Assembly (NCBI RefSeq): GCF_964194025.1
Contig: NC_134482.1
Span: 1,178,001 to 1,242,000 of the forward strand
Length of the DNA stretch: 64,000 nt
Source of the DNA: Convolutriloba macropyga
Lineage: Eukaryota
Reading direction: 5' to 3'
The notes under the pieces are model-generated. The model made no database searches. It was not told the DNA's origin and saw only the letters and a program-made list of their open reading frames with translations. Shown here piece after piece: positions 4,665 through 61,494 of this stretch; the first letter of the stretch is position 1; every line of letters starts with the position of its first letter. The translations under genes were made by a program, and so were the position numbers.

Positions 4665-4812
4665 NNNNNNNNNNNNNNNNNNNNNNNNNNNNNNNNNNNN
4701 NNNNNNNNNNNNNNNNNNNNNNNNNNNNNNNNNNNNNNNNNNNNNNNNNNNNNNNNNNNNNNNNNNNNNNNNNNNNNNNNNNNNNNNNNNNNNNNNNNNN
4801 NNNNNNNNNNNN
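4665..4812. other. Assembly gap (148 N)
   Basis: Run of N. Confidence 1.
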
Positions 4813-4849: not shown

Positions 4850-6700
4850 ACAGTTGAAAATCGGGTGTTTGTTTTCTAAGAAATTTCTCTAGGATACAGT
4901 CTTCGAGATTATCGGCTCGCTTTTCGTTGTGTTGAATCATTTGTTTGTTGAACTGGTTATGCTCTTTTGCTTGCACAAATTTTGTGGTCGTATGCCTCTT
5001 GTTTTCCATAGGACAAAACAGGTGGCGCGATCGTTGATGCTGCTGATGACATTTCAGTTGATACAGAAGCTGCTTGTCCAATATATATCACAAAACTAAC
5101 TTTTTGCGGGTGTTAGGTCAATTTTATGTTGGCAGTGAACTATTCAAGATTCATCAATAAGTGTTCGTAGATGATCTTCTAAATGTGTTGACTCACTTCT
5201 TTATTTAATTAGGCCTTGATACGGGTAGACTTCAGCGGGTCAATATGTTTTGAATCATTGTGGACATCTTTTGGTACGATTGAGCAAGAACGAATTCTTT
5301 GTAAGCTTTGGGTAACGTTTGCTGCATTTTCGGGAAAATATAGTTTGAGTTAGCTAGAACTCTTTCAGACCGAAACAATGCTGACCAAATTAATACTGAA
5401 TTACCGGCAACGTCTGATTGCGTTCTGGATTTAGGAGCAAGTAAAATTCATTAAGTTTAGTAAATTTTGCGCTGGTTTTCTACTATACTATATCATATTA
5501 AGGTGCTAAAGATACGGAATTGTGCAAGCGTTCTATTGCTCCATGTTGTTTAATTTCATTATCTGTTCCAGATATTACTGTGAGCGTTCCAAAATTCTCA
5601 TAGTTTGTGGATCTCAGAGAATTACGTAATTCAGTCGATTTTCAAATAGTGGACATAACTCTTTCATCAGACTAGATGTAAAAATTGTTCCAATGTCAGG
5701 AACTTGTGTTTTAGATGTGAATGTGCGTGATGAAAATTGTCCTCACCATTTGTTCTAGTACTGTATCTGCTGACGCCTTCGTGGGAAAGGATAGATGGTT
5801 TCCTCCAGAAAAGTTGACTCCCGCTAGTACTTAGTTATAGATTGTCAGTTGTATGGATTTATGGATTCTTTGGGATCAACTGGCGTCATGTTTCTTGAAA
5901 AGGTTGATCCAATAATACAGCTTGTAAGTTTCGTTTATAATGTTCCTTTGCTAATTCGAATGGAAAATAGTGAAACACTTTTCTAGGGTTTCGATATGAT
6001 TCTCCTTGACCTCTGAAAACTAGAATCGTTTCCGAATTTGGATCTGCTGTTCGTGTAATTGCTCCGTGAACTGTTGTTTTTGAGTTGTGTATTCATAAGA
6101 AAAACTCTGTCAACAATTTTTGCGGTTTACAAAGTCTTTTAGGTTTTACTGTCCCATCATTGTAAAGCACCGTGCGAAGGAAAACGTCGTTCTCAATTAC
6201 TAATCCGTCAAATTGCTCATACTTTTTATTTGGTTTGTTTTTTGCAGTAGGAAGTTCCTCCATTTTGAGGTTTTCCAGCCTTTAACTGGCATTAAGTTCC
6301 AATTTCTTCAGTTTTTCTACAATTGCCGGGTCAATTTCGTCCTCTTCATTGAGTACATCGGTAACTTCCTCAGTCGTAATTAAAGAAACATCTGGTGTTT
6401 TGCCTTCAATTTATTTCAAGTTCTCCGATTGCATTTTTTCCGTATTTTGGCATGCAAACTGTGCTTCCGAGTCTGTCTGCATGCGTGGAAGAAAGTCTAC
6501 CGCTGAGTTAGCCCTTACTGAATTTTTTGCGATCACAATATTGGATGCCAAAACTCTCTAAAGCATGTTCTACAACAATTGTGTGATTGATTTTGGAAGG
6601 AAAATTGCACAAAAGCTCTGTTTACACTTGAGCAGATGAATGTTCAACAATCGTGCGCAAACAAAACTTGAATCCCCTGGGTCTTCTTATCACCTCAATT
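4850..6700 (-). mobile_element. Decayed Gypsy/Ty3 LTR-retrotransposon pol fragment (RNase H end, integrase)
   Basis: RNase H C-terminus RVLASNIVIAKNSVRANSAVDFLPRMQTD (~6480-6560); LVIENDVFLRTVLYNDG (~6150-6200); integrase core PDIGTIFTSSLMKELCPLFENRLNYVIL*DPQTMRILERS (5581-5700); post-integrase IWSALFRSERVLANSNYI (~5340-5390). Many stops and frameshifts; no LTR located. Confidence 0.85.
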
Positions 6701-26990: not shown

Positions 26991-27621
26991 GTTAATTAAA
27001 ATAAGAGAAATTTTGACCTTGTCTTTGGAATGAGAATTAAATTCGGGACTAAAAGTAGCAGATTTCAGATCAAAATTTAAAATTTCAAAAGAACTTAGTC
27101 AATAAAAACATTTTAGGCGACTTGACTGACGTTCAATCAGATAACATTTTTTCTGATAACAACAACAGAAAACGAGCATTCATAGGAGACTGGAAATTGC
27201 TGTGCGCATCTTCCTAGGCCATCGGTTATCTAGTTATTAATGTTTTTAATAGTAGTATTAGGGATTTGGCTCTTCGGTGTCGTCGGGCGCGGGGACTATC
27301 TCCCTGTTCTTTTTGCCACTAAATGGAACAATCTCTCAGTCTCATCGACTATAAACATCACAAAATTTGTAAAAGATTCTTTCGACTATAGTTTAGATAA
27401 TCCTCCAACATTTGAGAAGTAACCTCGAAAAATTTTCGATTTGACAAGCCGAGAAGTCAGTCTCTGTTTTGTGTTTATTAACTGACATTTTAGCACGTTT
27501 TTTGGTTAAAAATGGCTCTGCTTGTATTTATTTATACAAATAGGCAAATTCAAGCATCTTTTCTTTCTTCAGTATAAATTACTCTTGTATTGATAAAAAA
27601 TTTATTTTTTTTCAGCTTGCA

Positions 27622-27842
27622 ATGACACAGTTCAACTTGAAGCCTATCTCGTCATTTCTTCAGCCTTTGCGTTCAAAGTATCCGGATACCGATATTCAGT
27701 CAACGAAGTCTGATAACGTAATAGTGCAACCCAAACCTCATGTGTTTGAGCATGATTACGACGAGGTTTCAGTAGTTGCTAGCCAAGATGAACATTCCTA
27801 TTCCCTAATGAATGCAGATAGAAAATTACAAAATGAAATCAA
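27622..27842 (+). CDS. Divergent POU-class transcription factor, coding exon 1
   Basis: Open frame MTQFNLKP...QNEI preceded by acceptor ttttttttcag (27615); donor GTAGGT at 27843 is phase 2, matching exon 2. An additional upstream exon is possible. Confidence 0.7.
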
Positions 27843-28004
27843 GTAGGTTTATTAAAGTTTCTGGTCTTAAGTTTTTAGCGAGGTTGGTCATTTTACTACT
27901 ATAAAGGGGCAAAGTAGATATCAATCTATACAAATGATAATCAGTCTCTCCTTCTCTCCAAATTACGCTAATAGAATGATCTGTCTTAAGCTAATCTTTT
28001 TCAG

Positions 28005-28290
28005 GGCCACTCGGATCCTAAAAAATCTTAGGCCTGTGAAACCTTTGACGGAATTCCAATTAATTACGAGAATTGAAAAGAAGAGTTTCAATCCTAGAGT
28101 CTCAAAACCCAAAATTTATCCTAAAGTGGGTGACGTGTGCAACTTTCAACATGACTATGAAATGGCGAGCTGCTTACAAGAAGTTGAGGTCCAAATTTCA
28201 AGGTTGATGAAGGCAAGAGTCATTCTGAATTTGACACAATCACAATTCAGTGAATATTTGGCCACAAACTACGGAGTTAGTCTTCAACAG
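28005..28290 (+). CDS. Divergent POU-class transcription factor, coding exon 2 (N-half of POU-specific domain)
   Basis: CTAAT branch-like site plus cttttttcag-type acceptor (28004); LQEVEVQISRLMKARVILNLTQSQFSEYLATNYGVSLQQ aligns with POU-S LEELEQFAK.FKQRRIKLGFTQ.DVG.AL..LYG..FSQ; phase-0 donor GTTAGG at 28291. Confidence 0.85.
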
Positions 28291-28647
28291 GTTAGGAATT
28301 TATTTGTGTTTCAAGAGTACTTTTCAATTCAGCTCTATTTGCCGGTGCGTTAGTGCGTTGGCGTCTCTTTGTCCAGGCTTCCATTAGAACCATAGTAAAA
28401 GTTGGGGTGCTCCCTTTGTATTTCATGGATTTATTGCTCGCGAACAAAGTTTGAAGCAGTTATTGCAGTCATTTTCAAATAATTGCTTGTATATTTTTTT
28501 TGCATATGATAACCTTTGTTTTTGACTACTGCGAGAATCGATACAAATATGCATATTGATAATGCAAACACACGTGAATTCTGACAGTAGTCAAAACCAA
28601 AAAGCTGCGAAGAAGGAAATGTCAATTAAAATTAAATTGGTTTTAAA

Positions 28648-28686
28648 GAAAGAACGTTTTCGAACATTGCATTCATCATCAGGTTT
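28648..28686 (-). ncRNA. Minimal hammerhead-ribozyme-like motif (Penelope-associated, degenerate)
   Basis: Minus strand reads AAAC-CUGAUGA-U-GAAU-GCAAU-GUUC-GAAA-ACG-UUC: core boxes, stem II and palindromic AACGUU stem III; sister copies at 30961-30996 (-) and 7668-7705 (+). Confidence 0.55.
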
Positions 28687-30960
28687 ACATCGTCAGGTTT
28701 ACATTAATAGGTTTAGTTTTCACAATCGAAAAAGTTTTACAAAGTATATAAACTTTTCACTGACTCTTTCTATCGAGTTCTACGAATTGAGTTAAAATAA
28801 CAACAAATTTTTGAAATTATTTACAGTTAAAATCACATTTAAAACTTTTCATTTACATTTAATACATAGAAAAATTTCAATTGAAAATCCCGGTTATTTT
28901 GTTTTCAACTCCTGAAAAGGAGCTTTTACTTTCATTCCTAACTCTTGTGTTCCTTAACTTGTTGGGGGTCGACAAAATTCTGAATTAACATGTATCGGCA
29001 TAAATTTTGAATTTCAAAAGTCAAATGTTTTTACATTTGAACTAATACTTCAATGTCAGTTCCCGCCCCAGTTTAAGTTGCGGGTTTTTAGTTGCTGTTT
29101 CGGCTTTTTGATTTGGATTGCTTCTATTGTCATTAGTTTTTCAACCCCGCGACATGCATCGAGAATGTCCCATTCAATAATATGCGCTCTACCACAACAT
29201 TCAACGAGATATTGTCCCACAGTGGAATCTTTTGATGTTTCAAAATTCTAGTGGTAACATGTCAGCTGGTTTGGCCGACATACATGAAATTGCATCCATT
29301 ACTTGTTACTTTATAAACCACATTCGATTTCATATTTTTGTTAAAAGATGATGTTATAGTGGGCAAGCAAGTTCTTATTTTTCTTGTTGTGAAAATGATT
29401 TAATATCACACATTTTTTTTTCAGTGTACTCGCAAACGTTTGAGTGATGATTCCTCTGTATTGCACAAAAAACTTTAGTTTAAGCTCCTTTATGTTGAGA
29501 CTTTTAACTGTTTTGAGATGGTTTTCATTTTTAGGGGGTTTTGCTGTAACCTTTTCATTTCTAACTATGTTACCCAACGTCTCGTTAACAATACTGGAAG
29601 ACCACTCAATTAGATTCTGATTTTCAGTCCCCAGATCTCCTGATTTTTCTTAGGGGCTCCACCAAAAGATTGGCGATCACTGGTTGCATTGAAAATCATA
29701 TGTACAGTCCTTTGAATCACAGTTTTCTTATGTTGTAACGTGCACAGCTACTGAAATTTAAGGTTATGCCAGTATAAGTAGATTTCTGATACCAATGACA
29801 GCTAATTTGTCTTTCATCGTTTACGTTTATGTTCAGATCTAGGAACGCCAGGTTTCCATCCGCGTTGGGTGTCTCGAGAGTGAATTTTAAGTTTGTGAAG
29901 CGAATTCGCATACTCAAGTACTTGAGGGTTCACTATAATAGTGAACACTATGTCGTCCACATACCTCTCGAATACTTTTAATTCATGTGTCATCCGTTGT
30001 ACTTTTTTCTGCACAACGGGAACAGATCCATACAATTTCAGTCATGTTTTTATAGTTCGTGTCAGTAATACCTTGGCTTTTTTTCATGAAACCAGTTTTA
30101 CATGATTCGCTCTCGACTCCTTTCCCTCGGAACCTAACAATTCGTTTACAATCAGTGCACATTCCCTTCATGTCAGGAATTTTGTTCTCCCTTCCCTCAT
30201 TTGGTCTCTGCAAGGATTTCTCAAAAGATTTCATCCACAAATTTGCCAGAATTACCGCCAGTGAAGCACCCATGGCTAAACCGTCAGATTGAGTGTAACA
30301 CATTTTTTTACACTTAATGTGAACATTCGTTGCGGCTACTCTCAAAAAGCTCTTCATAGCTGACCTCGGAATCTCAGGACCCTCGTCACTGGAGTACACT
30401 TCTTTAAGCGCAATTTCAATTTTCTCAACCGGTAATTTGGTGTACAAGATTTTAACATGGAGAGATACTGTTGGCTCATCTTCCTCCAGATTGGTAGCCT
30501 CTAAAGCGGCCGTGGTAGCATTTGAGATAGCTACCGGGTATTGACAGAAAGGGCCGAAGCCGAGTACCGTTTTTATATACTTTAGCAAGGCCATAAATCC
30601 TGGCCAGTTGCGATTCAGTTGTCCTGAGCGTGTGATAAATCTTTTTGCTTGTTTCCCTGTTTCATTAGTTGATGCAAACTGCTATTGATGTTTCAGTTTT
30701 TACGGCTAGGTTGGCGCTTTTTCCATTACGAGCCTCAAACTGACTGCATTAATGATTTTATTCAGTTTATCCGAGTATTGAACAGACTACCGCGTGATGG
30801 AGTCAGCTGGCTACTAAAATATGAATCATCTTGTCTGTAACCTTTAAGAAAATTGCTATTTTTTTCTTTCGCGCACTTTTAGGGCCCGTTGAAGATCGAA
30901 TTGACAATGGTTAAAGCTGCAGAGAAGGAATTGTCAATTAAAAATTGAATTGATTTTGAA

Positions 30961-30996
30961 AAACAAACGTTTTTGAACATTGCGTTCGTCAGGTTT
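30961..30996 (-). ncRNA. Degenerate minimal hammerhead-like motif in the second Penelope terminal repeat
   Basis: AAAC-CUGAC-GAAC-GCAAU-GUUC-AAAAACGUUU-GUUU; stem I (AAAC/GUUU) and stem II (GAAC/GUUC) intact, core mutated. Confidence 0.45.
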
Positions 30997-32477
30997 AAAA
31001 GTGATTTCACAATCGAATAAAATTTTTTACAAAGTATATAAACTTTTCATTGACCCTATCTACCGTATTCTACGAAATTAGATAAAATAAAAATTTTTTA
31101 CAGTTAAAATCACATTACAACAATATATTTACATTAATAAATCTTTTTACATAAATACATCAAAAAATTTTTCAAAGTTTTCCGGAATATTTGAAATTCC
31201 CGATTATTTTGTTTTCAATTCCTGAAAAGGAGTTTTTACTTTCATCTGTTGTTTTTCTTTACTTGTTGGGAAAAATCAAAAAGCTTCTCGCAGAGGTTGA
31301 AAGTGGATCATCATATGTGATAAATGTGAAAAAAGATTGACGCATGGTGATTATAGATTTTAAATTGAGAGTTGAAAACATAACTGTCAAGAATTTCTCT
31401 TGGAAAACTGACGATGGGGTAGCTTTGGTTGTAGCTAGCGTGAGCATAGCGAGGCCATCAATACATAGGTGGGGGAGTAGTTGAGTAGTTACAGGGGAGG
31501 GTGGTCAATGACTGCCGTAATTAAAAATTGTCCTTTACAACGCACCATGAAGTGCTGCTTTGCGCAGTAGCTCCGCTGAATCTTGCATTTAGGGCCTATT
31601 TTGACTATAAAATATCTGCTCAGAGACTGAACGTTTATCTCTTTTTCGACGAAAAGTCAAATCACTCAAGCGAGCGACGGAACATTGTAGAAAAAAAACG
31701 CCAATCAAAAATTTTGCAAAAAGATGCACAAGTTACAACTGCCTGAAACTTTGAGAGTAATAAAAAGTTTTACTTTAGTGTTCTGTCTCGTTTTGTTTTC
31801 ATGCATAGTTTTTTTGTTTTAGAAAGCCGCTTTTGTTCGCAACTTGAGCAATGTGACTTTTGAACAAAAAAGGGATAAACTGGTTAATCGCCAGGGAGTT
31901 CAGCATCTGTGTACCTGTCTGGGAGGCTTACTAGGCTCTAAGTGTGCGGTTCGCTAGAGCTAAAGAGCAAGCAGAACTTCAAGCTTTGAAGTGCAACTTT
32001 TAATTTGGTAGGTCCTATTAAGCTTGAGCTAGCATAGTTGCAACCAAAGTGAACTCCTCTCGAGGGCTATTCGATGGATGATTGTAGAATATCTTAAATC
32101 ACTATTTACACTTTAATCTTCTCATTTTCTCTCAAATGTTTTTTTTTCAAATATTTATTGCTATGATTATCTTTTCGTTACTACTGCGCCCGTTATGGAA
32201 GAAATAGAGATGAAGCGGTCAAGCCACGTCATTAAACAAAGTTTTGGGATTTCATTGGATGGATTGCAAAATAGTAACATTTCAAATCTCGCCAGCTATT
32301 TTGAAATTCTGATGGTTTAATTTGAATTGTTGTGTTTTTCAAGTCAGAAATCTGCGAAAATTTTAAAAGAAAGTAGTTTTTACTGTGAATTCTTGTTTTC
32401 CTTTTGTATCGTGCGTCTTCGGAAAATTTTATTTCGTTGCTCAGAAAGTGAGATTTTTTGAATACTTGAATAACTTT

Positions 32478-32890
32478 TAATTGCTCTTGAACGAAGTTCG
32501 TAGCAATTATTGTAAACGTGTGTGTCTTTTTGTTTTTATGCAAATTTTTCGCTTGACGATTTTGCTTTTTTCTTCTAGAACATTCTTTGACTTCTCAAGT
32601 GACTTTTTTACGCTTTTTTCCATCATTTGTGAGCGATCTCTATTGCTCTCACTCCGAAGTAAAGCTTGTTGCTAATATATAATCGGTTGCAATATAGTTA
32701 AAACAAGTGACTCATAGCGCAGTGGGTAGTGCGGGTGCCTAGGGATCGGAAGAGCAATGGTTCGGAATCCCGTTGGGCGCAAATTTTTTTTGCACCCAAA
32801 AAGAAAAATTGTTTAGGCTACAGCTCCTGAATGAAATTGCCTCGCCTGTCGTTCAAGAGCAATTCTTCCGACATTTGTCGATTTATGTTT
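32478..32890 (+). mobile_element. Non-autonomous Helentron-associated element (HINE/DINE-1-like)
   Basis: Perfect 16-bp subterminal inverted repeat AATTGCTCTTGAACGA (32479-32494) / TCGTTCAAGAGCAATT (32849-32864); 5' partial hairpin; 3' hairpin CGACA-TT-TGTCG followed by TTATGTTT; T-rich flanks, no TSD seen. Confidence 0.7.
32707..32791 (+). pseudogene. tRNA-derived / Pol III-type unit inside the HINE
   Basis: A box TAGCGCAGTGG, D-arm GCGC/GTGC, B-box-like GGTTCGGAATCCC, 3' TGGGCGC-A then T8; anticodon stem does not pair. Confidence 0.55.
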
Positions 32891-33104
32891 ATAAATAAAT
32901 GTTTCAATTAGCAGCATGATATAGTAGAAAGCCATTTTTGTCTACAAGAAATTGATACTTTAGAATACCTTTTTCGTGACCTCTTCACTAAAAGTTGCGC
33001 TTGATAGACTTTCACCCCTATTAGACGCTAACTGAAGATTTTGAAATCTGTTGGCGTTTTACAATAGGTTAGAGTAGTACATGGTTAACATCTCTGAAAC
33101 ATAA

Positions 33105-33450
33105 TTTGTAGCAATTGTATAAGTCCTGTGGTCTTTTTTAAATTCGTTTTTTCGCTTGATCGAAATTGCGTTCGACCCTTTTAAACATTTCGTCCCCAAA
33201 AAGGGATAAACAGGTAAAGCCCGTAGGGTTTTAGGTGGCTGAGCAGCTCTTTTAGAGCTGTGTGCCTTAATAGTTTAAGTATGCGATTCACTGAAACTGC
33301 TTGAGACAATTTCACGGCGTGAAGGGCGATTCTTAATCCTGAACCGCCTAATGCTGGTTTCCCTAAGCCCCAGCTGGCTACTATTGAAGCCAACGGCTCG
33401 CCGTCTGCATGAGAGGAATTATCGCGACGTTAGTGGATTATGTTTTGTTT
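33105..33450 (+). mobile_element. Degenerate HINE-like element
   Basis: 5' tttgtagcaattg...ttttcgcttga; 3' cctaagccccagctggcta..ctcgccg..gagaggaatt..ttatgtttt, similar to 35030-35325. Confidence 0.45.
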
Positions 33451-33522
33451 AATAGCCGCGCTCAGCAAGCTATTGCGCTTTTTTACAATTAAAGAATTTA
33501 AACTCCATTGGGACTTCATGAT

Positions 33523-33893
33523 TAATTGCTCTCGTATAGAAGCAATTGTAAACTTGTGTCTTTTTTATGCAAAACTTTCGCTTGACCGTTTTGAATTTTA
33601 CGCCCTTGACTATTGCTTTTCGCGTGATCTCAATCACAATTTCAAGCAGCTGAACTCAGTTGGCTTAATATAATACTAAAATTCAAATGAAAAGTGCCTC
33701 GAAACGGTGCCATTTTTCACTTTAAATCTTAATAGTGGTTTATGTTAAACTCTTTTGTGGTTTTTTGAAGCCCACTATTGAACTTCTTAGTCCCATTTAG
33801 GCTCCCCCTCCGACTGAAGCAGGCTGCAATTGATTAGACTTCCCACTAGTCGTTCGGGAGCAACTCCTCCGACGTTTAGTCGGTTATGTTTTT
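33523..33893 (+). mobile_element. HINE-like element
   Basis: 5' taattgctctcg..agcaattgtaaac; 3' tcgttcgggagcaa, hairpin ccgac-gttta-gtcgg, then ttatgtttttt. Confidence 0.6.
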
Positions 33894-33894
33894 T

Positions 33895-34215
33895 GAAGTC
33901 AAATTGGAGTGATGATTTTGGTCACGCCGAATCAGAGTGGAGTGAAAAGGCTAGTGGTATTGCGGCGTGAATTTGTTTCGCTCTAACTTCTAAGAGGAGT
34001 GAAAATTGGTGTTTGAACAAAAATTCGCTTTCTCACTAGTGGTTTTTTGTTCACCTGCGGCAGTTTCTTTGAATTTTATCGTTTCGTCAATTTTTCGATC
34101 GGATTGTCTTCTAAACGGTTTTCCCAATCAGATCATAGTCCATTCTAGGTCTAGTTTTTTGTTTGTTAAATGAAAATTCTTCCAATTGTAGGTCAGGACT
34201 CGTACTGCTATGTTC
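33895..34215 (+). repeat. Diverged solo copy of the repeat family that forms module C of the 40-54 kb array
   Basis: Shares gaagtcaaattggagt, tcacgccgaa, ggcgtgaa, ttcgctctaactt, ggtgtttgaacaaaaattcgctttctc, tcaggact..tgctatgtt with the array. Confidence 0.8.
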
Positions 34216-35029
34216 CTTAACTTCGTCGAATAAAATTTTGTTTCGCTTTACCTCGTTTGACGCTTTTCCGACGTGAAATCTTTATGACTTTTTCAGGCTT
34301 TTTCGTTCCTTGCTCATTCTGATCAAAGCACTTGCTAAAAAACGAAATCAAAAGTCGAAACGGGATAAACCCATGAAGCCCAAACAATTTTAGAAGCCCG
34401 CTACTTGAAGTTTGTTCTTTTAAGTTAAGTTACCCTCTCGTTATTGAGACTAACCCCTGTATCCTCTCAATAAGTAGCAGGAGTTTTTCTAACAAAAAAT
34501 GAGATCAAAATGGTTCACACTTTGTAAAAAATCCTTTCATCAATCAATTCTTTCCTTTTTCGGTTCTTTCAGTCCCAATCGGGATTTTATCAATGGCGGC
34601 TATTTCCGTTATCTGCCGCGTATGTTTATTTTGAGAATTCTTAAGTTTTCAAATTGAGTTATTTTGAGGTTTTGATTGATTTTAAATTGGTTTTGATAAC
34701 TCAAATCCTAAAGTTTTCTATTAAAGAGACGACCAGAGGGCATCGGAGGAAGTTTGTTGGGTCTTCTCGTCCGCAATTTTGTGTTTTTATTAATTTTTTT
34801 AATGAGAAAAAGCACTGGAGGCCTTATTATTTTTGGGCAGATAGCTTTTTTTTAGAGTTTTTTTGCCGAAGAACTATTAACTAATGAAAGACTTAATTAG
34901 CATTGTAGTCAAAGTTTAATCTGTTTTGATGTTTTTTGTGTTCAGTAACAGCTGGATACATTTAGTTTTGCCGTGATTTTGATTCGGTGTCATGCGTCCA
35001 GTTTTTGAGGAACGAGAATTTGAGTTTTA

Positions 35030-35325
35030 TTAATTGCTCTCAAAGGAAGTTTGTAGCAATTATATTAGTTATATGGTCTTTTTTATGCGATTTATTGCTT
35101 GACCGATTTTTGTCGGACTCTTTTGACTTTTCGTTTTCAAAAACGGGATACGCCCCCCTCGTCCAGCGCTCCCAAAACCTTACACCCACCCTATCACTTG
35201 ACGCCTCCCCCCGCACTCACATCACACTCACTTGATGCATCTCTAGGCCCCAGTTGGCTACAACCGATACCTACTGCTCGCCGGTCGTTTGAGAGTAATT
35301 CGACCGATATCGACTGTTTTTATTA
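35030..35325 (+). mobile_element. HINE-like element
   Basis: 5' taattgctctcaaagg..tagcaatt; 3' tcgtttgagagtaatt followed by a hairpin-like segment and T-run. Confidence 0.55.
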
Positions 35326-35799
35326 GTTTTCGTTTTTAGTGTGTAGATTGATAACGTTCAAGTCAGCGTTAACCACTAGCCAATTCTACAGTCAGCAGGA
35401 TATATTTTTGCCTTTCGTGTTGGTCTTTTTTGCAATTTGTAATACTTTTAGCAACATTCTCTCACTAGACGAGAAAGAATGTTTCTGTACTTATTGTTGA
35501 AAGAAGGATGGTTGACATTTGATGTGATCAAATCATTGTCGATTTAGTTTCCGCATCCTGAAGTAGCAAGGCGATTGCGGTTCATTCTATTACTATCAGT
35601 AAATAATTCTGACAGTAGTCATGTCTAAAAGGGAGTAGATTAAAAAAAATCGATGAGTTAACTAACGGATATTCAATTAACTTCAATTTGCTAAGAATGG
35701 TTTTGTTTTATCCGAATTTTTTCTCCTTCCTGTACCTTAAATTTATAATACAGACCTACCTTATAAAATTAGTGATTATAATTCAGATTTGCATTTTAG

Positions 35800-36231
35800 A
35801 ACGATATTTCAAAACTAGAGAAGAGAGACCTGAGTTTGAAAAAAGCACAGTCTCAATTGAAAATGCTAGGGCAGTTATTTCACGATCTGAAGGATACGGA
35901 CTGGAGCAGCATTGCGATAGAGCCAATTCCCGAATTAACAAGAAAACGAACTGTTTACCCGTCCCATTATTTGGAGCTTTTTAACGAGTTGTTTGAAATC
36001 AACGCTTACCCACACAGAATCGAATTGCATTTTCTTTCCCGGTTCGTTTTAACCGACCGCGAGAGACTACGTGAGTGGTTTTCGGCAAAACGTATGAAGA
36101 TGGGCAAGAAAAGCCGTTTGAACTTGAAGAAAGGCAACTTCGATTTATGGAAAGAAGCTGTTTACAAATGGGACAAAAAGTGGAACAAAATCGAGCCAAT
36201 CATCGAAGAAGTTTTAGAAGGAACAATTTAA
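35800..36231 (+). CDS. Divergent POU-class transcription factor, coding exon 3 (C-half of POU-S, linker, homeodomain)
   Basis: Acceptor gcattttag (35799), phase 0; NDISKLEKRDLSLKKAQSQLKML resembles POU6-type SAICRFEKLDITPKSAQKLKPVL; ungapped homeodomain 35935-36114 with R5, L13, F20, Y25, P26, L34, W48, F49, R53; AATAAA at 36582. Confidence 0.9.
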   Translation, partial: NDISKLEKRDLSLKKAQSQLKMLGQLFHDLKDTDWSSIAIEPIPELTRKRTVYPSHYLELFNELFEINAYPHRIELHFLSRFVLTDRERLREWFSAKRMKMGKKSRLNLKKGNFDLWKEAVYKWDKKWNKIEPIIEEVLEGTI

Positions 36232-43000: not shown

Positions 43001-46000
43001 GTTTGATCTGATTTGTTTAGAAATAGTTTTCCCAATTCAGTTATATTCTGTTTTGGGTCTAGCTTTTTGTTTAGTCTATGAAAATTCTTTGAATTGTACA
43101 TCAGGACTTGTCCTGCTATGTTTTTTTATTTCGACCGTCATGATTTTTGTTACGACCATATGACGTCACAACCACTTCAAATCTGCTTTTTGTTCATTCA
43201 TTCATGCAAAATTAACCAGAGTGCGTGTGTGACGTTATTTTTTGCTCTCCGTGGAGCGAGTTTTCGTTCATTCGCGTGATTAAATTATTGGTCACACTTG
43301 ACTTACCTCACTCTCAAAAATGACTTCCTGACTCTAAAATTGGCTTCTCTTAACTATAATTCAAAGAGATAAGGTCAAATGGATGTGTGTCACTCTAAAT
43401 GAAGGCTATTTGAAAGCAGCTAATAGAGGCATCAAAAATTTATACAGATTTTTAATCAAAATATAACATATCAGCCGTCAATGAAAAGACGAATTTTTTG
43501 GTCAGTCTTTTACCGTTTTTTTGAGATCGCAGATCTACGAAGCTATTGCGGCTATTTTCTGGCAATCTGCCAACTATGTTTTTGATCACGCCGAAACAGG
43601 AAATGGAGCGAAGAAGCAATTGGTTTTGAGGCGTGAAATTTTTTCGCTCTAACTTTAAAGTAGAGTGAGAAAACGGGGTTTGAACAAAAATTCGCTTTCT
43701 TGCTAGTGGATTTTTGTTCACATGCGGCAATTTGACTTTGATTTTCACTGTTTTTTTTTTCAATTTTTTTGGATAGGATTTTTTAATATAGTTTTCCCCA
43801 ATCCATTCATAGGTCATTTTAGCCTAGTTTTTTGTTTGAGCCAAATTTCCATTTCTCTCACGCGTTTTTCGTTCACACGCGGCATTTTGGCATTGATTTT
43901 CAGTTTTTTTGTTTTGTTTGATCTGATTTGTTTAGAAATAGTTTTCCCAATTCAGTTATATTCTGTTTTGGGTCTAGCTTTTTGTTTAGTCTATGAAAAT
44001 TCTTTGAATTGTACATCAGGACTTGTCCTGCTATGTTTTTTTATTTCGACCGTCATGATTTTTGTTACGACCATATGACGTCACAACCACTTTTTGTTCA
44101 TTCGTTCATGCAATTTCAACATAAGTGCGTGCGTGACTGCATATTTCGCTCTTAGTGGAGCACGTTGTTTTGTTCATTGTCGTGATTAAATTTTTTTTCA
44201 CACGTGACTTACCTCACTCTCAAAAATATCTTCCTGGCTTTGAAATTGACTTTTTGACTTATTTGACTTATTTACTTTAATTCAAAGAGATAAGGTCAAG
44301 TGAATGTGTCACTTCAAATCTGCTTTTTGTTCATTATTGCTTGCATTTTTAACCAGAGTGCGTGTGTGACGTTATTTTTGCTCTCCATGGAGCGAGTTTT
44401 CGTTCATTCGCGTGATTAAATTTTTGGTCACACTTGACTTACCTCACTCTCAAAAATGACTTCCTGACTCTAAAATTGGCTTCTCTTAACTATAATTCAA
44501 AGAGATAGGGTCAAATGGATGTGTGTCACTCTAAATGAAGGCTATTTGAAATCAGCTAATAGAGGCAGAAAAAACTTATACAGATTTTTTTTATCAAAAT
44601 ATAACATATCAGCCTTCAATGAAAAGACGTTTTTTTGGTCTGTCTTTTACTGTTTTTGTTTGACACTGCAATTCACTTCGTTTAACTAAATTTTGGATTA
44701 ATTGACGTCATCTAAGCCAGTTTCAGCCTTTTTTGTCCTTATTCTGTAAAAACAGAGGCCGTGAACATATTTATGCAGCCTGAAAAATTTTGAATGTTTG
44801 CAGAATGCTTCCCTCTGAGGGTTCAAAGTTATGTTGACATTTTTTGTTGCGTTTCATTCTTGGTTGCATTTGCATCATGTCAAATATTCTCATTTAAACT
44901 CTTTGTTGGGAAAAAGGCGCCATAAAGGCTAACGTAACGTAAAACTTCTTAATTTTAAAATTACAATGATAAGAATTGCAAAGTTTTGCCAAATTGCATT
45001 TGTGTTGTATAAAATTTTGAAGTGTATTTGAGAAAACTATAGGTGTAATGAAAAGCTTCCATCAAAAATATAGGCATGTTTTACTTTTACTTTGAGAAAA
45101 CTTCTAGGTCCGAATGTTGGTACTATGTTGGTCCAAATGTTTCGTACTATCAATTTTTTCACTTTGCTGAAATCAGTAAGGTTATGACGATCGTTGAAAA
45201 ATAAGTCCATGTAAAGCAGGGTAACAATACGAAGAACTTGAAGTTGAATTAAATGCAATAAATGTCCTAGAGACAAAATTAAGTTCAAAATTTTGTGAAT
45301 TATCTTTTGGCATGTCAGTTTGTTTTGTTTGACAGACAAGAAGAACTACTGTATATATTAACAATTATGACGCATTGATGTGCCTGTAGCATAATCAGAC
45401 AAAAATTGTTCAAAATAGATTTGCTTCTGAGATCCCGAATGTGGATTTATTTGTCATTTGTAGATGTTTTGTGGTTTAAGCGATGTTTGTTGTCTTGTTT
45501 AATTTATTGAAACAGATCTTCCATTAAGGTTTTCAATAAATGTTCGGAAACATTTTTTCGGGTTTTTGTTAACTACTATGTCTAAAGATATAAAAATGGC
45601 ATTCTTTTTCTAATTTTTCAAAAAGATTTTTTTGCGCTGTTGGTATTTGTTAATTGATGTGCATTACAATTGATGTGAAATGTACATTTAATTTTGCCCA
45701 ATGTCTCTTTAATAGCCGCACAGCAATAGCTGGGGCTATTATTGGCCTTCGCTTGATTTTTTACAATTCAAAGAGTTTTTACAATTCAGAGAATTTGAAT
45801 TGTATTGGGGCGCTGTCTTTTTTCTTTTTTTAAAGATCTGTTCACACATTTTCATGATTTTTGAAGTCAAATTGGAGTAGTGATTAATAGCCGCACAGCG
45901 CTAGCTGGGGCTATTATTGGTCTTCTTTCGGTTTTTTATTTCGTCGCGATTTTACGACCATATGACGTCACAACCACTTCAAATCTGCTTTTTGTGCATT

Positions 46001-49000
46001 CGGTCACGCAATTTCAACTGAAGTGCGTGTGTGACGTCATTTCTTAGTGGAGCGATTTTTTGTCCATTTGCGTGATTAACTTTTTGGTCACACTTGACTT
46101 ACCTCACTCTCAAAAATGACTTCCTGACTCTAATATTGGCTTCTCTTAACTATAATTCAAAGAGATAAGGTCAAATGAGCGCGTGTGACTCTAAATGAAG
46201 GTTATTTAAAAGCAGCTATTAGAGGCAGCAAAAATTTATACAGATTTTTAATCAAAATAAAACATATCAGCCTTCAATGAAAAGACGAATTTTTTGGTCA
46301 GTCTTTTACCGTTTTTTTGAGATTGCAGATCTACAAAGCTATTGCGGCTATTTTCTGGCAATCTGCCAATTATGTTTTTCGTCACGCCGAAACAGGAAAT
46401 GGAGTGAAAAAGCAATTGGTTTTGAGGCGTGAAATTTTTTCGCTAACTTTAGAGTGAGAAAACGGTGTTTGAACAAAAATTCGCTTTCTCGCTAGTGGAT
46501 TTTTGTTCACTGTTTTTTTTTTTCAATTTTTTTGGATAGGATTTTTTTAATATGGTTTTCCCCAATCCATTCATAGGTCATTTTAGCCTAGTTTTTTGTT
46601 TGAGCCAAATTTCCCTTTCTCTCACGCGTTTTTCGTTCACACGCGGCATTTTGACATTGATTTTCAGTTTTTTTGTTTTGTTTGATCTGATTTGTTTAGA
46701 AATAGTTTTCCCAATTCAATTATACTCCGTTTTGGGTCTAGCTTTTTGTTTAGTCTATGAAAACTCTTTGAATTGTACATCAGGACTTGTCCTGCTATGT
46801 CTTTTTATATCGACCGTCATGATTTTTGTTGCGACCATACGACGTCACAACCACTTCAAATCTGCTTTTTGTTCATTCATTCATGCAATTTTAACCAGAG
46901 TGCGTGTGTGACGTTATTTTTTGCTCTTCGTGGAGCGAGTTTTCGTTCATTTGCGTGATTAAATTTTTGGTCACACTTGACTTACCTCACTCTCAAAAAT
47001 GACTTCCTCACTTTGAAATAGACTTATTTACTTTAATTCAAAGAGATATGGTCAAATGGTTGTGTGTCACTCTAAATGAAGGCTATTTGAAAGCAGCTAA
47101 TAGAGGCAGCAAAAATTTATACAGATTTTTAATCAAAATATAACATATCATCCTTCAATGAAAAGACGAATTTTTTGGTCAGTCTTTTACCGTTTTTTTC
47201 AGATCGCAGATCTACGAAGCTATTGCGGCTATTTTCTGGCAATCTGCCAACTATGTTTTTGGTCACGCCGAAACAGGCAATGGAGCGAAGAAGCAATTGG
47301 TTTTGAGGCGTGAAATTTTTTCGCTCTAACTTTAAAGTAGTGTGAGAAAACGGGGTTTGAACACAAATTCGCTTTCTTGCTAGTGGATTTTTGTTCACAT
47401 GCGGCAATTTGACTTTGATTTTCACTGTTTTTTTTTTCAATTTTTTTGGATAGGATTTTTTAATATGGTTTTCCCCAATCCAGTCATAGGTCATTTTAGC
47501 CTAGTTTTTTGTTTGAGCCAAATTTCCATTTCTCTCCGCGTTTTTCGTTCACACGCGGCATTTTGACATTGATTTTCAGTTTTTTGTTTTGTTTGATCTG
47601 ATTTGTTTAGAAATAGTTTTCCCAATTCAGTTATACTCCATTTTGGGTCTAGCTTTTGTTTAGTCTATGGAAATTCTTTGAATTGTACATCAGGACTTGT
47701 CCTGCTATGTTTTTTATTTCGACCGTCATGATTTTTGTTACGACCATATGACGATCGTTAAAAAATAAGTCCATGTAAAGCAGGGTAACAATACGAAGAA
47801 CTTGAAGTTGAATTAAATGCAATAAATGTCCTAGAGAGAAAATGAAGTTCAAAGTTTTGTGAATTATCTTTTGGCATGTCAGTTTGTTTTGTTTGACAGA
47901 CAAGAAGAACTACTGTATATATTAACAATTATGACGCATTGATGTGCCTGTAGCATAATCAGACAAAAATTGTTCAAAATAGATTTGCTTCTGAGATCCC
48001 GAATGTGGATTTATTTGTCATTTGTAGATGTTTTGTGGTTTAAGCGATGTTTGTTGTCTTGTTTAATTTATTGAAACAGATCTTCCATTAAGGTTTTCAA
48101 TAAATGTTCGGAAACATTTTTTCGGGTTTTTGTTAACTACTATGTCTAAAGATATAAAAATGGCATTCTTTTTCTAATTTTTCAAAAAGATTTTTTTGCG
48201 CTGTTAGTATTTGTTAATTGATGTGCAATACAATTGATGTGAAATGTACATTTAATTTTGCTCAATGTCTCTTTAATAGCCGCACAGCAATAGCTGGGGC
48301 TATTATTGGCCTTCGCTTGATTTTTTACAATTCAAAGAGTTTTTACAATTCAGAGAATTTGAATTGTATTAGGGCGCTGTCTTTTTTCTTTTTTTAAAGA
48401 TCTGTTCACAGATCTGTTTTTAAAGATCTGGCAATCTGCCAACTATGTTTTTGGTCACGCCGAAACAGGCAATGGAGCGAAGAAGCAATTGGTTTTGAGG
48501 CGTGAAATTTTTTCGCTCTAACTTTAAAGTAGTGTGAGAAAACGGGGTTTGAACACAAATTCGCTTTCTTGCTAGTGGATTTTTGTTCACATGCGGCAAT
48601 TTGACTTTGATTTTCACTGTTTTTTTTCAATTTTTTTGGATAGGATTTTTTAATATGGTTTTCCCCAATCCAGTCATAGGTCATTTTAGCCTAGTTTTTT
48701 GTTTGAGCCAAATTTCCATTTCTCTCCGCGTTTTTCGTTCACACGCGGCATTTTGACATTGATTTTCAGTTTTTTGTTTTGTTTGATCTGATTTGTTTAG
48801 AAATAGTTTTCCCAATTCAGTTATACTCCATTTTGGGTCTAGCTTTTGTTTAGTCTATGGAAATTCTTTGAATTGTACATCAGGACTTGTCCTGCTATGT
48901 TTTTTATTTCGACCGTCATGATTTTTGTTACGACCATATGACGTCACAACCACTTTTTGTTCATTCGTTCATGCAATTTCAACATAAGTGCGTGCGTGAC

Positions 49001-57471: not shown

Positions 57472-60400
57472 TGACGTTTAACATTATCGCTGATTTTTTT
57501 TTATGACTCACTGGAGTAATAACACAGTGTTCTAACTTGAACCTTAGCCGAAAAAATTAACAGTGGTTTCAGCATGAAATAGTAGTTTTATGGCTCGAAT
57601 ATTAAAGAGCTTATCAATCATCGGTTCTCCTAGACAGCTAATAATCTCGGGGTCGGATTTATTACTTAAATAATTTGAAAGCTTCACTTCTGAGGTATGG
57701 TTTGTTCTAGACAACTGAATTTTGGCCGAAAAGGATCTCACTGGCATTTGAGAACTTCTAATCAAGATACTGCTGAAATTGCCTCAGATTAATTTTTTCT
57801 TTTTGATTGTGTAATGAATTTGCGTGTCTTTTCGTATTGAGCAGCGGGAGTAGTAATAGAGTGTTGTGTATCAATACTAGGGGGTCCACGGTGTGTAAAA
57901 AGCGACCCCTCAGTTTTGGCCGAAAATTTGATGATCTCTGATCGAGAGACTACGGTATTGGAACAGCAACGCCATGGGGGTCTCTCTCGGTTTCCTTCAG
58001 CAAAAACCAAGTTTGTAATACCCCCATCAATTTCATCTCTCGTAACGCGGTTATTCATTTAAAGAGCATGTCAATTTTAGCTAACGTCTGTTTACTGCAA
58101 CTACAATTTGTGAAATGATCTTGCCAAATGGATTTCTTCCAAACGCTTGTTTCGAGTTCGTCTTCATATAATGTCCCATCGCGCCCAAGCGCTTTTCAGG
58201 AAAATTTTAGGCGGATATATTTACAAGTAAACGTTTAGAGGTGATCGTTTTTTTACACACCGTGGACCCCCCCCCTTCTCCCTAGTATTGATACACAGCA
58301 CTCCTATTACTACTAGCGAAATAAACTGGTCAACCCTGAAGTCATCAAGTCACTGAGCAGTTCTCTCAGAGCCTTACTAGTCTGTCCCTACTAGCTATTC
58401 CCTGAAAATGTTGAAGCTTCATAAATTTATAGGTCCAAGGGCAGTTTTTAAAGTTTGGCCCCCTCTCGCACTGCTCGTATAGGCGTAATCTCTGTGAAAA
58501 AAAATAAGGGGTGGATACCTCCCTTTTTGTCCCGTGTTATTTTTTCCTGGCCCACCCCACATTCTTGTCACCACCTCATAATTGAAGATAAGCACTCAGC
58601 CTAAGCTAGCGAAATACAAAGCCAACTCCTCGGTTATAGTTTATGATATCATGTATTTATATTCATTAATTCTAGTCCAGGTCCAACAATTTGACAGGAA
58701 GATTATTGAAACAAAGTGAAAGCTAAAATTTGAGCGGAATCTTTTGAGACAGGTGAAGAGCTCTTTAATCATGTAATGTTAAACAATGTTCTACCGTCAA
58801 ACCTCGATCAATTTTCAGATTTTTAGATTTTCAACTTAGTGCATAGGATCAGGAATATATTTGATTGTTTTTGATAGCTGTCGAACGATGGCTGAAGCAA
58901 TTATTGTGAACATGCCTGAATTTTAAGTAAAATTTTGGCTTATTTTGCTGTTTTTACTTTTTGAGTCACTTTTTCGCCCTTGACCTCGGCATTCGCGTGA
59001 TTTAATGCTGCATCGCATTCACAAGTGCCAGCACTTGAACCCAAATGGTGGCAGGTTTCTACTATTTTTTGGACAATTTATTGACGTTTAACATTATCGC
59101 TGATTTTTTTATGACTCACTGGAGTAATAACAGTGTTCTAACTTGAACCTTAGCCGAAAAAATTAACAGTGGTTTCAGCATGAAATAGTAGTTTTATGGC
59201 TCGAATATTAAAGAGCTTATCAATCATCGGTTCTCCTAGACAGCTAATAATCTCGGGGTCGGATTTATTACTTAAATAATTTGAAAGCTTCACTTCTGAG
59301 GTATGGTTTGTTCTAGACAACTGAATTTTGGCCAAAAAGGATCTCACTGGCATTTGAGAACTTCTAATCAAGATACTGCTGAAATTGCCTCAGATTAATT
59401 TTTTCTTTTTGATTGTGTAATGAATTTGCGTGTCTTTTCGTATTGAGCAGCGGGAGTAGTAATAGAGTGTTGTGTATCAATACTAGGGGGTCCACGGTGT
59501 GTAAAAAGCGACCCCTCAGTTTTGGCCGAAAATTTGATGATCTCTGATCGAGAGACTACGGTATTGGAACAGCAACGCCATGGGGGTCTCTCTCGGTTTC
59601 CTTCAGCAAAAAAATGTTGAAGCTTCATAAATTTATAGGTCCAAGGGCAGTTTTTAAAGTTTGGCCCCCTCTCGCACTGCTCGTATAGGCGTAATCTCTG
59701 TGAAAAAAAAATAAGGGGTGGAGACCTCCCTTTTTGTCCCGTGTTATTTTTTCCTGGCCCACCCCACATTCTTGTCACCCTCATAATTGAAGATAAGCAC
59801 TCAGCCTAAGCTAGCGAAATACAAAGCCAACTCCTCGGTTATAGTTTATGATATGTATTTATATTCATTAATTCTAGTCCAGGTCCAGCAATTTGACAGG
59901 AAGATTATTGAAACAAAGTGAAAGCTAAAATTTAAGCGGAATCTTTTGAGACAGGTGAAGAGCTCTTTAATCATGTAATGTTAAACAATGTTCTACCGTC
60001 AAACCTCGATCAATTTTCAGATTTTTAGATTTTCAACTTAGTGCATAGGATCAGGAATATATTTGATTGTTTTTGATAGCTGTCGAACGATGGCTGAAGC
60101 AATTATTGTGAACATGCCTGAATTTTAAGTAAAATTTAGGCTTATTTTGCTGTTTTTACTTTTTGAGTCACTTTTTCGCCCTTGACCTCGGCATTCGCGT
60201 GATTTAATGCTGCATCGCATTCACAAGTGCCAGCACTTGAACCCAAATGGTGGCAGGTTTCTACTATTTTTTTGGACAATTTATTGACGTTTAACATTAT
60301 TGCTGATTTTTTTATGACTCACTGGAGTAATAACAGTGTTCTAACTTGAACCTTAGCCGAAAAAATTAACAGTGGTTTCAGCATGAAATAGTAGTTTTAT

Positions 60401-61494
60401 GGCTCGAATATTAAAGAGCTTATCAATCATCGGTTCTCCTAGACAGCTAATAATCTCGGGGTCGGATTTATTACTTAAATAATTTGAAAGCTTCACTTCT
60501 GAGGTATGGTTTGTTCTAGACAACTGAATTTTGGCCAAAAAGGATCTCACTGGCATTTGAGAACTTCTAATCAAGATACTGCTGAAATTGCCTCAGATTA
60601 ATTTTTTCTTCTTTTTGATTGTGTAATGAATTTGCGTGTCTTTTCGTATTGAGCAGCGGGAGTAGTAATAGAGTGTTGTGTATCAATACTAGGGGGTCCA
60701 CGGTGTGTAAAAAGCGACCCCTCAGTTTTGGCCGAAAATTTGATGATCTCTGATCGAGAGACTACGGTATTGGAACAGCAACGCCATGGGGGTCTCTCTC
60801 GGTTTCCTTCAGCAAAAAAATGTTGAAGCTTCATAAATTTATAGGTCCAAGGGCAGTTTTTAAAGTTTGGCCCCCTCTCGCACTGCTCGTATAGGCGTAA
60901 TCTCTGTGAAAAAAAAATAAGGGGTGGATACCTCCCTTTTTGTCCCGTGTTATTTTTTCCTGGCCCACCCCACATTCTTGTCACCCTCATAATTGAAGAT
61001 AAGCACTCAGCCTAAGCTAGCGAAATACAAAGCCAACTCCTCGGTTATAGTTTATGATATCATGTATTTATATTCATTAATTCTAGTCCAGGTCCAACAA
61101 TTTGACAGGAAGATTATTGAAACAAAGTGAAAGCTAAAATTTAAGCGGAATCTTTTGAGACAGGTGAAGAGCTCTTTAATCATGTAATGTTAAACAATGT
61201 TCTACCGTCAAACCTCGATCAATTTTCAGATTTTTAGATTTTCAACTTAGTGCATAGGATCAGGAATATATTTGATTGTTTTTGATAGCTGTCGAACGAT
61301 GGCTGAAGCAATTATTGTGAACATGCCTGAATTTTAAGTAAAATTTAGGCTTATTTTGCTGTTTTTACTTTTTGAGTCACTTTTTCGCCCTTGACCTCGG
61401 CATTCGCGTGATTTAATGCTGCATCGCATTCACAAGTGCCAGCACTTGAACCCAAATGGTGGCAGGTTTCTACTATTTTTTGGACAATTTATTG
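57472..61494. repeat. Tandem array of three near-identical units (1610, 1203, 1210 bp)
   Basis: Units start tgacgtttaacattat at 57472, 59082, 60285; units 2 and 3 lack ~58007-58404. Confidence 0.97.
57849..58314. mobile_element. ~466-bp MITE with ~55-bp TIRs (probable TA target)
   Basis: agtagtaatagagtgttgtgtatcaatactaggg..gtccacggtgtgtaaaa versus ttttacacaccgtggaccc..ccctagtattgatacacagcactcctattactact. Confidence 0.75.

Follow-up and report, generated by a model that had tools for sequence, protein, structure and literature searches.

Gene structure

The 64,000-nt stretch analysed here, hereafter the window, lies on contig NC_134482.1 of the acoel Convolutriloba macropyga (positions 1,178,001 to 1,242,000, forward strand) and contains a gene whose predicted product joins a POU-specific domain to a homeodomain. 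The gene consists of three exons (Table 1), which on splicing give 939 nt that read as 312 codons and a TAA without a single internal stop; given the composition of the window (65% A+T), the chance of a stop-free run of 312 codons is about 1.4e-10. The spliced protein is identical at every residue to a 312-residue C. macropyga entry in RefSeq (XP_075263090.1, P0023) that carries the name 'POU domain, class 6, transcription factor 1-like', and an exhaustive HMMER search with exon 3 recovered a cluster of 98%-identical fragments that has XP_075263090.1 among its members. The gene is single copy in the C. macropyga genome. The three pieces are confirmed as a real, intact three-exon protein-coding gene, with splice sites as predicted. 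In the encoded protein, the POU-specific helix-turn-helix occupies approximately residues 126-200 and is followed by a short linker and by the homeodomain at approximately residues 216-275.

An earlier note on this DNA, made from the letters alone, had proposed the same gene, and its structural claims hold up well. The model of three pieces joined through GT-AG introns in phases 2 and 0 is exact, and splicing the pieces anew returned the same uninterrupted 312-residue reading frame. The second intron, which the note had placed inside the POU-specific recognition helix, does divide that helix, with the alignments locating the break between Gln44 and residue 45. The 7.5-kb intron described there as filled with transposable elements measures 7,509 nt and is, by copy number, largely interspersed repeats. 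The description of the gene as hidden, by contrast, fails, because RefSeq already holds the identical model, produced by automatic NCBI annotation under a POU6F1-like name. As a gene discovery, the locus adds nothing new.

Table 1. Positions, in window coordinates, of the gene, its domains and other features of the window
Feature	Position	Strand	Remarks
Exon 1	27622-27842	+	from the ATG to the donor site; codes for residues 1-73, with 2 nt left over; N-terminal motifs L[KR]PISSFL.PLR, EHDY and EH.Y, conserved in the family
Intron 1	27843-28004	+	162 nt; GT..AG; phase 2
Exon 2	28005-28290	+	residues 74-169
POU-specific domain, part in exon 2	28159-28290	+	helices 1-2 and start of helix 3; last residue Gln44
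Intron 2	28291-35799	+	7,509 nt; GT..AG; phase 0; mainly interspersed repeats
Exon 3	35800-36231	+	residues 170-312 plus TAA
POU-specific domain, remainder	35800-35892	+	in exon 3, followed by the linker
Homeodomain	35938-36117	+	in exon 3, followed by a conserved C-terminal tail
Dispersed repeat, ~1.9 kb	28600-30530		within intron 2; judged by copy number in the genome
Open reading frame in the ~1.9-kb repeat	29983-30594	-	203 residues
Direct repeats	28601-28935 and 30913-31245		~330 nt
Short interspersed element, ~415 nt	32475-32896		within intron 2; very abundant in the genome
Pair of open reading frames	43452-43817 and 47129-47494	-	121 residues each
Pair of open reading frames	59395-59784 and 60598-60990	-	129 and 130 residues
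Run of N	4665-4812		148 N in a row

Domain assignment

Searched against Pfam, the full protein yields both domains: residues 133-191 match the POU-specific domain (Pou, PF00157) with 26.1 bits (E = 8e-6), and the homeodomain (Homeodomain, PF00046) is matched with 22.4 bits, each just under its curated cut-off (27 and 22.9 bits, respectively). With exon 3 alone, the homeodomain score rises to 25.5 bits, above the cut-off, and in the orthologues described below it reaches 40.7 bits (P0002) and 30.9 bits. When the exons are scanned separately, Pfam returns the homeodomain only and misses the POU-specific domain, because intron 2 splits that domain. In a phmmer search of all PDB sequences, the top match is POU6F1/Brn-5 (3d1n; E = 6e-9), in one alignment that runs over the POU-specific domain, the linker and the homeodomain (residues 142-269); the next matches are all POU proteins, namely Oct-1, Oct-4, POU2F3, Brn-2, Oct-6 and Pit-1. 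A profile of the family formed by the protein and its orthologues matches POU6F1 with 52.5 bits (E = 5e-13), and both phmmer and this profile align the entire POU-specific domain to POU6F1, Oct-1 and Oct-4. Matches among reviewed UniProt entries are likewise all POU proteins, with the highest identity to POU6F1 (27%) and 20-24% to the others.

Structure prediction gives a similar picture. From an alignment of the family only, AlphaFold2 produced a model with a mean predicted local distance difference test (pLDDT) score of 48 overall and of 71-84 over the POU-specific region; only the POU-specific part of this model was used, the remainder being poor. Its top 35 Foldseek matches in the PDB are POU domains, and the POU-specific part alone is matched with template modelling (TM) scores of 0.71-0.77 and root-mean-square deviations (r.m.s.d.) of 2.2-3.1 Å. 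A second model, calculated after addition of canonical POU rows and hence not independent of those sequences in its alignment, has a mean pLDDT of 83.6 and displays four plus three helices connected by a floppy linker of ~15 residues with low pLDDT. The best whole-domain TM score of the second model is to 3d1n (0.59/0.63), and matches to its homeodomain only reach 0.79-0.84. Across the models, Foldseek aligns solved POU-specific domains with TM scores of 0.71-0.79 and r.m.s.d. of 2.0-3.1 Å. Pfam, phmmer, the family profile and AlphaFold2 with Foldseek thus agree on the POU-specific helix-turn-helix, linker and homeodomain that the earlier note had claimed, and the POU-specific fold emerges even from the family-only alignment. 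As judged by sequence comparison and modelling, the protein is a POU-class factor with a predicted POU-specific domain, short linker and C-terminal homeodomain.

Orthologues, haplotypes and selection

When 1.84 billion representatives were searched exhaustively with HMMER, the only hits at E below 1e-10 were the relatives that follow. One orthologue (P0002/P0027) comprises 325 residues, is 43% identical to the C. macropyga protein and derives from marine metatranscriptomes; P0027 sits on an intronless contig of 1,013 nt, and this orthologous mRNA is ungapped across both junction positions. The other (L015), on another ENA genomic contig, is 34% identical. It was modelled with exons at 1223-1497, 5183-5462 and 5591-6034 of that contig, separated by GT-AG introns at the identical two codon positions and in the same phases as in C. 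macropyga; its intron 2 spans merely 128 nt, compared with 7,509 nt in the window. The three acoel-like orthologues are mutually 33-43% identical and all intact. Outside the POU domain, they have in common the motifs L[KR]PISSFL.PLR, EHDY, EH.Y, FD.WK and a C-terminal [ED]G[ST][IV]; the conserved N-terminal motif is LKPISSFLQPLR and the C-terminal one FDLWK...EG[ST][IV]. Both the N- and the C-terminal motifs are conserved only within this small acoel family. All three proteins terminate in [ED]G[ST][IV]-COOH after the conserved FD.WK (the C. macropyga end lies at 36229-36231), and the two elements together could be a docking motif.

Four sequencing runs were compared with the locus. Their contigs cover introns and flanks evenly, which identifies the runs as genomic DNA, and they are therefore informative on haplotype variation only. 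A second haplotype (L014), whose variants match those in the DNA runs, is collinear with the window through the repeat-filled intron 2, repeats included; it retains all four splice sites and encodes its own version of the open reading frame (P0024). Between the two haplotypes, the 939 coding nucleotides contain 17 substitutions and no insertion or deletion (indel), and the flanking and intronic sequence shows 151 gap columns in 2,141 nt. Over the 162 nt of intron 1 there are 8 substitutions and 1 indel, with no indel in the exons on either side. The ratio of non-synonymous to synonymous substitution rates (dN/dS), calculated from these small substitution counts, amounts to 0.22 for the whole coding sequence and to 0.06 for the POU region (residues 125-275), where the sole replacement sits at the C-terminal end of the homeodomain. 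These sequence comparisons all point to a gene under purifying selection and not to a decaying one.

Heterozygosity is very high at this locus. Comparison of window positions 27300-28700 with L014 gives a difference of ~5% in intron 1 and in the upstream flank, and long alignment blocks between the haplotypes (1.2-5 kb) are 85-96% identical, with frequent indels outside the coding sequence.

Residues at the predicted DNA interface

The three orthologues were compared residue by residue with 22 canonical POU rows. In Oct-1 numbering, we take Arg20, Gln27, Gln44, Thr45, Arg49 and Glu51 to be the POU-specific residues that contact bases and phosphates. The family retains POU-specific Arg20, Thr26, Gln27, Gln44, Ile47, Glu51 and Ser56, and position 49, canonically Arg, is Lys, Lys and Arg across the orthologues. 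Ser43, Thr45 and Thr46 are replaced, and positions 43, 45 and 46 vary among the orthologues. In the homeodomain, Arg5, Thr6, Leu16 (Phe in C. macropyga), Phe20, Pro26, Trp48, Phe49 and Arg53 are retained, and the Arg3/Arg5 arm is also kept.

The homeodomain recognition helix has the sequence RLREWFSAKRMK in C. macropyga; its counterparts are VLRDWFLTRRQK in P0002 and SLRKWFDKRRLN in L015. The POU-type helix VVRVWFCN[RQ]RQ, with Val47, Cys50 and Asn51, occurs in none of these three orthologues, while WFCN occurs in 22 of the 22 canonical rows; Asn51 is almost invariant in homeodomains. Across the three orthologues, position 47 is Glu, Asp and Lys, position 50 Ser, Leu and Asp, position 51 Ala, Thr and Lys, and position 54 Met, Gln and Leu. 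The four positions, which presumably are those facing the major groove, differ both from POU proteins and among the orthologues. Judged by these residues, the homeodomain may rightly be called rewritten, whereas for the POU-specific domain that word goes too far.

POU genes of the genome and class affinity

A six-frame scan of the C. macropyga genome with PF00157 identified an intronless POU3 gene (L001, on C2), a POU4 gene (L003, on C12) and a POU2-like gene (L002, on C3), together with a partial tandem copy of the POU2-like gene and, on an unplaced scaffold, a POU3 copy with a frameshift. A scan of the genome for the pattern WFCNxRQ found POU3 and POU4 only, plus one chance site that is not in a homeodomain, and neither scan revealed another POU6-like locus. 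Weak PF00157 hits (L007-L010) and a WFCNERQ site on C10 were dismissed as noise, being surrounded by stops and devoid of POU features. The POU3 protein of this genome is 76-88% identical to POU3 on unrelated metagenome contigs.

The two additional copies have unusual structures. The second, partial POU2-like copy (L002/L005; G000:C3:55107920-55115937) lies ~4.9 kb downstream of the first and begins in the middle of the POU-specific domain (ELNLSFKNM...), with an otherwise identical protein sequence; either a local tandem duplication or an artefact of assembly could account for it. The POU3-like copy (L004/L006; G000:C3254:35874-39049) has a POU-specific domain split over two frames, one in-frame stop and many replacements relative to POU3 on C2, which suggests either a pseudogene or a haplotig rich in errors.

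A survey of Xenacoelomorpha by Brauchle et al. 2018 (PMC6125248) lists Pou2, Pou3, Pou4 and Pou6, although among the three acoel transcriptomes only one yielded Pou6, and POU6 has been reported in every annotated metazoan genome except those of nematodes (PMC4245813). Because POU2, POU3 and POU4 are all present in the C. macropyga genome and no second candidate for POU6 turned up, the most parsimonious assumption is that the present gene fills the POU6 slot, in agreement with the published set of Pou2, Pou3, Pou4 and Pou6. The correspondence with the xenacoelomorph Pou6, which was found in one of three acoel species, is by class list and not by sequence: all four Pou slots are filled here if the gene is counted as Pou6.

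For the C. macropyga protein, similarity scores point towards the same class. It matches human POU6F1 with 39.3 bits, against 24.5 bits for Oct-1 and 26.4 bits for the best of 43 POU1-3 sequences, a lead of 13-15 bits for POU6F1 over each of the other classes sampled. Among PDB entries, the family profile ranks POU6F1 first with 52.5 bits, followed by the next entry with 40.4 bits. The protein also shares a set of short signatures with POU6F1: the POU-specific recognition helix is followed by EK.D and K.AQ in both, position 8 of both homeodomains is aromatic, and both have FE.N..P as well as DRE ahead of helix 3. All of these are lacking or different in the POU2, POU3 and POU4 rows. Searches for further reference sequences added no POU6: a word-indexed search with P0002 gave back P0002 itself, a family alignment seeded with a canonical RVWFCNRRQ row gave family fragments only, and a metagenome scan, which used POU2/3/4-type patterns, gave only loci of POU1-4. 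In a maximum-likelihood tree (LG+C20) of the family with POU1, POU2, POU3 and POU4 sequences only, the family is monophyletic with 100/100 support and falls outside all four classes.

Interpretation and alternatives

Within the POU class, POU6F1/Brn-5 is the closest counterpart of the protein. It has the same order of POU-specific domain, short linker and homeodomain, is the best match of both the protein and the family profile, and provides the top identity among reviewed entries. The differences are nonetheless large. Identity to POU6F1 is only ~27-37% per subdomain; WFCNRRQ becomes WFSAKRM in C. macropyga (WFLTRRQ and WFDKRRL in the orthologues), with Val47, Cys50 and Asn51 lost in this family; in the POU-specific domain, other residues take the place of Thr45 and Thr46, and Lys that of Arg49; and the acoel family has N- and C-terminal motifs of its own. 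With the POU2, POU3 and POU4 proteins of the same genome, the protein shares its domain architecture and a near-invariant scaffold, comprising R20, T26, Q27, Q44, I47, E51 and S56 in the POU-specific domain and R5, T6, L16, F20, P26, W48 and F49 in the homeodomain. Those proteins, however, are highly conserved and carry WFCN[RQ]RQ, and the window gene lies outside their clades. The contrast extends to rates of change, in that the family retains 33-43% identity among its three acoel-like sources whereas POU3 retains 76-88%.

We consider the locus to be a genuine single-copy three-exon POU gene, most likely a strongly accelerated descendant of POU6, and its derivation from the ancestral POU6 in the acoel lineage is probable. 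The assignment stops short of proof because the orthologue P0002 scores as well with POU3 as with POU6F1. The closeness to POU6 that the earlier note saw is clear only for the C. macropyga protein, which also has its highest Swiss-Prot identity with POU6F1; the family profile puts POU6F1 at the head of the PDB entries but scores an invertebrate POU3 almost as high, and P0002 shows no preference. The sequence pattern cited there in favour of POU6 (EK.D, K.AQ, FE.N..P, DRE) is indeed common to POU6F1 and missing or different in POU2, POU3 and POU4, and the claim of a divergence far beyond that of canonical POU proteins is borne out by the ~27% identity to POU6F1. The phylogeny, run on POU1-4, sets the family apart from these four classes.

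Several observations weigh against descent from POU6 or against a functional POU protein altogether. With the full-length protein, both Pfam scores remain just below cut-off (26.1 versus 27 bits for Pou, 22.4 versus 22.9 bits for Homeodomain). No RNA run of C. macropyga came to light, the four runs compared being genomic DNA, so that both splice junctions stand as predicted. With Asn51 lost and acidic side chains at position 46 of the POU-specific domain and position 47 of the homeodomain, DNA binding may be weak or lost. P0002 gives 31.9 bits with POU6F1 and 32.6 bits with an invertebrate POU3, and some invertebrate POU3 sequences score up to 51.6 bits with the family profile. Finally, the family branch measures ~10 changes per site, so that any placement is fragile, in a tree that is itself without POU6 references.

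The earlier note had gone further and suggested a lineage-specific new POU subclass. On such a reading, the gene would be an acoel-restricted paralogue that arose by duplication from POU6 or another class, or that has an origin hard to trace, with canonical POU6 lost. The family's monophyly (100/100), the very long branch that sets it apart from POU1-4, the conserved motifs of its own at both termini, the absence of a preference for POU6F1 over POU3 in P0002 and the fact that only family members appear at E below 1e-10 among the 1.84 billion representatives would all fit such a subclass, as would the recovery of Pou6 in just one of three acoel transcriptomes in the published survey (PMC6125248). 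On the other hand, the genome holds exactly four POU loci and the canonical one that is absent is POU6; POU6F1 heads the list for the protein as well as for the family profile, 12-15 bits above the other POU classes in the PDB; and reviewed POU6F1 has the highest identity of all classes. Moreover, we know of no genome that has both a canonical POU6 and this gene, which we also count against a separate subclass. We regard a new subclass as unlikely, although it retains appreciable weight; with POU2, POU3 and POU4 present and no other POU6, a fast-evolving POU6 descendant is the simplest account. The gene represents a known family, in a fast-evolving form, rather than a hidden new one.

Two further readings are far less probable. 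That the locus is a pseudogene or other non-functional copy, or a chance reading frame among transposons, would accommodate the loss of homeodomain Asn51 and of the WFCNRRQ motif, the full-protein Pfam scores below cut-off and the lack of an RNA run holding the gene. It is, however, already close to refuted and very improbable: an open reading frame of 312 codons would arise by chance at ~1e-10, dN/dS stands at 0.22 for the whole coding sequence and 0.06 for the POU region, the coding sequences of the two haplotypes differ by no indel, the three orthologues remain intact with conserved intron positions at 33-43% identity, and one of them was recovered as mRNA. Membership of another class that pairs a lambda-repressor-like helix-turn-helix with a following homeodomain, HNF1 or CUT/ONECUT, is the least probable reading of all. 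These classes share that architecture and lie near the protein in language-model features, where the clusters CUT (0.85) and HNF-1 (0.84) come close to POU (0.86), with all three below the 0.9 level that counts. Pfam nevertheless reports Pou and neither HNF-1_N nor CUT, no structural match to either of the two was obtained, every significant two-domain match in the PDB and Swiss-Prot is a POU protein, and the homeodomain lacks an HNF1-type insertion; the alignments favour POU.

Returning to the favoured reading of an accelerated POU6 descendant, the protein would be a nuclear, DNA-binding regulator. Its POU-specific domain probably still reads bases through retained contacts, because Arg20, Thr26, Gln27, Gln44, Lys/Arg49 and Glu51 are kept. 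The major-groove specificity of the homeodomain, in turn, appears changed or relaxed, because positions 47, 50, 51 and 54 are replaced and variable among the orthologues, and this domain may act as a low-specificity or re-specified clamp. Target choice would then probably come from the POU-specific domain plus partners that the lineage-specific motifs at the two termini recruit. Only tentatively do we propose the full scenario, in which an acoel-restricted POU lineage that lost Asn51 and the canonical residues at all four groove-reading positions, and kept Gln44, Lys/Arg49 and Glu51 in its POU-specific domain, reads DNA by the latter alone, or works as a partner-dependent or competing factor, and has replaced canonical POU6 function in these worms.

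The comparative value of the gene is modest. In one genome, POU3 and POU4 stayed nearly unchanged while one POU gene, probably POU6, ran to ~27% identity; it lost the WFCNRRQ/Asn51 helix and gained lineage-specific conserved motifs, yet appears to be under purifying selection. Such fast divergence of POU6 could be the reason that transcriptome surveys detected Pou6 in only one acoel out of three. The gene also offers a natural test of how a POU domain functions without the canonical homeodomain recognition helix.

Repeats and other features of the window

The repeat nature of intron 2 is judged from copy number because Pfam, applied to the open reading frames of the intron, found no reverse transcriptase or other family at E <= 0.01. 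The ~1.9-kb dispersed repeat gave 2,485 candidates in a first look at the genome and 107 scored matches of 70-85% identity. The 203-residue reading frame on its minus strand resembles a reverse transcriptase by motif only. Two direct repeats, 76-93% identical and 2.3 kb apart, bracket this reading frame, as the terminal repeats of a retroelement would. The short interspersed element of ~415 nt is very abundant in the genome, with 17,926 first-look candidates and scored copies that are 85-92% identical. An Rfam search of the window yielded no matches.

Elsewhere in the window, the run of N represents an assembly gap or masked sequence. Two pairs of similar reading frames are also present. The frames of one pair, MTYEWIGENYIKKSYPKKLKKK... 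and MTYDWIGENHIKK..., are near copies of each other situated 3.7 kb apart; those of the other pair, MRVTRMWGGPGKNNTGQKGR..., are near-identical, lie 1.2 kb apart and are probably repeat copies.

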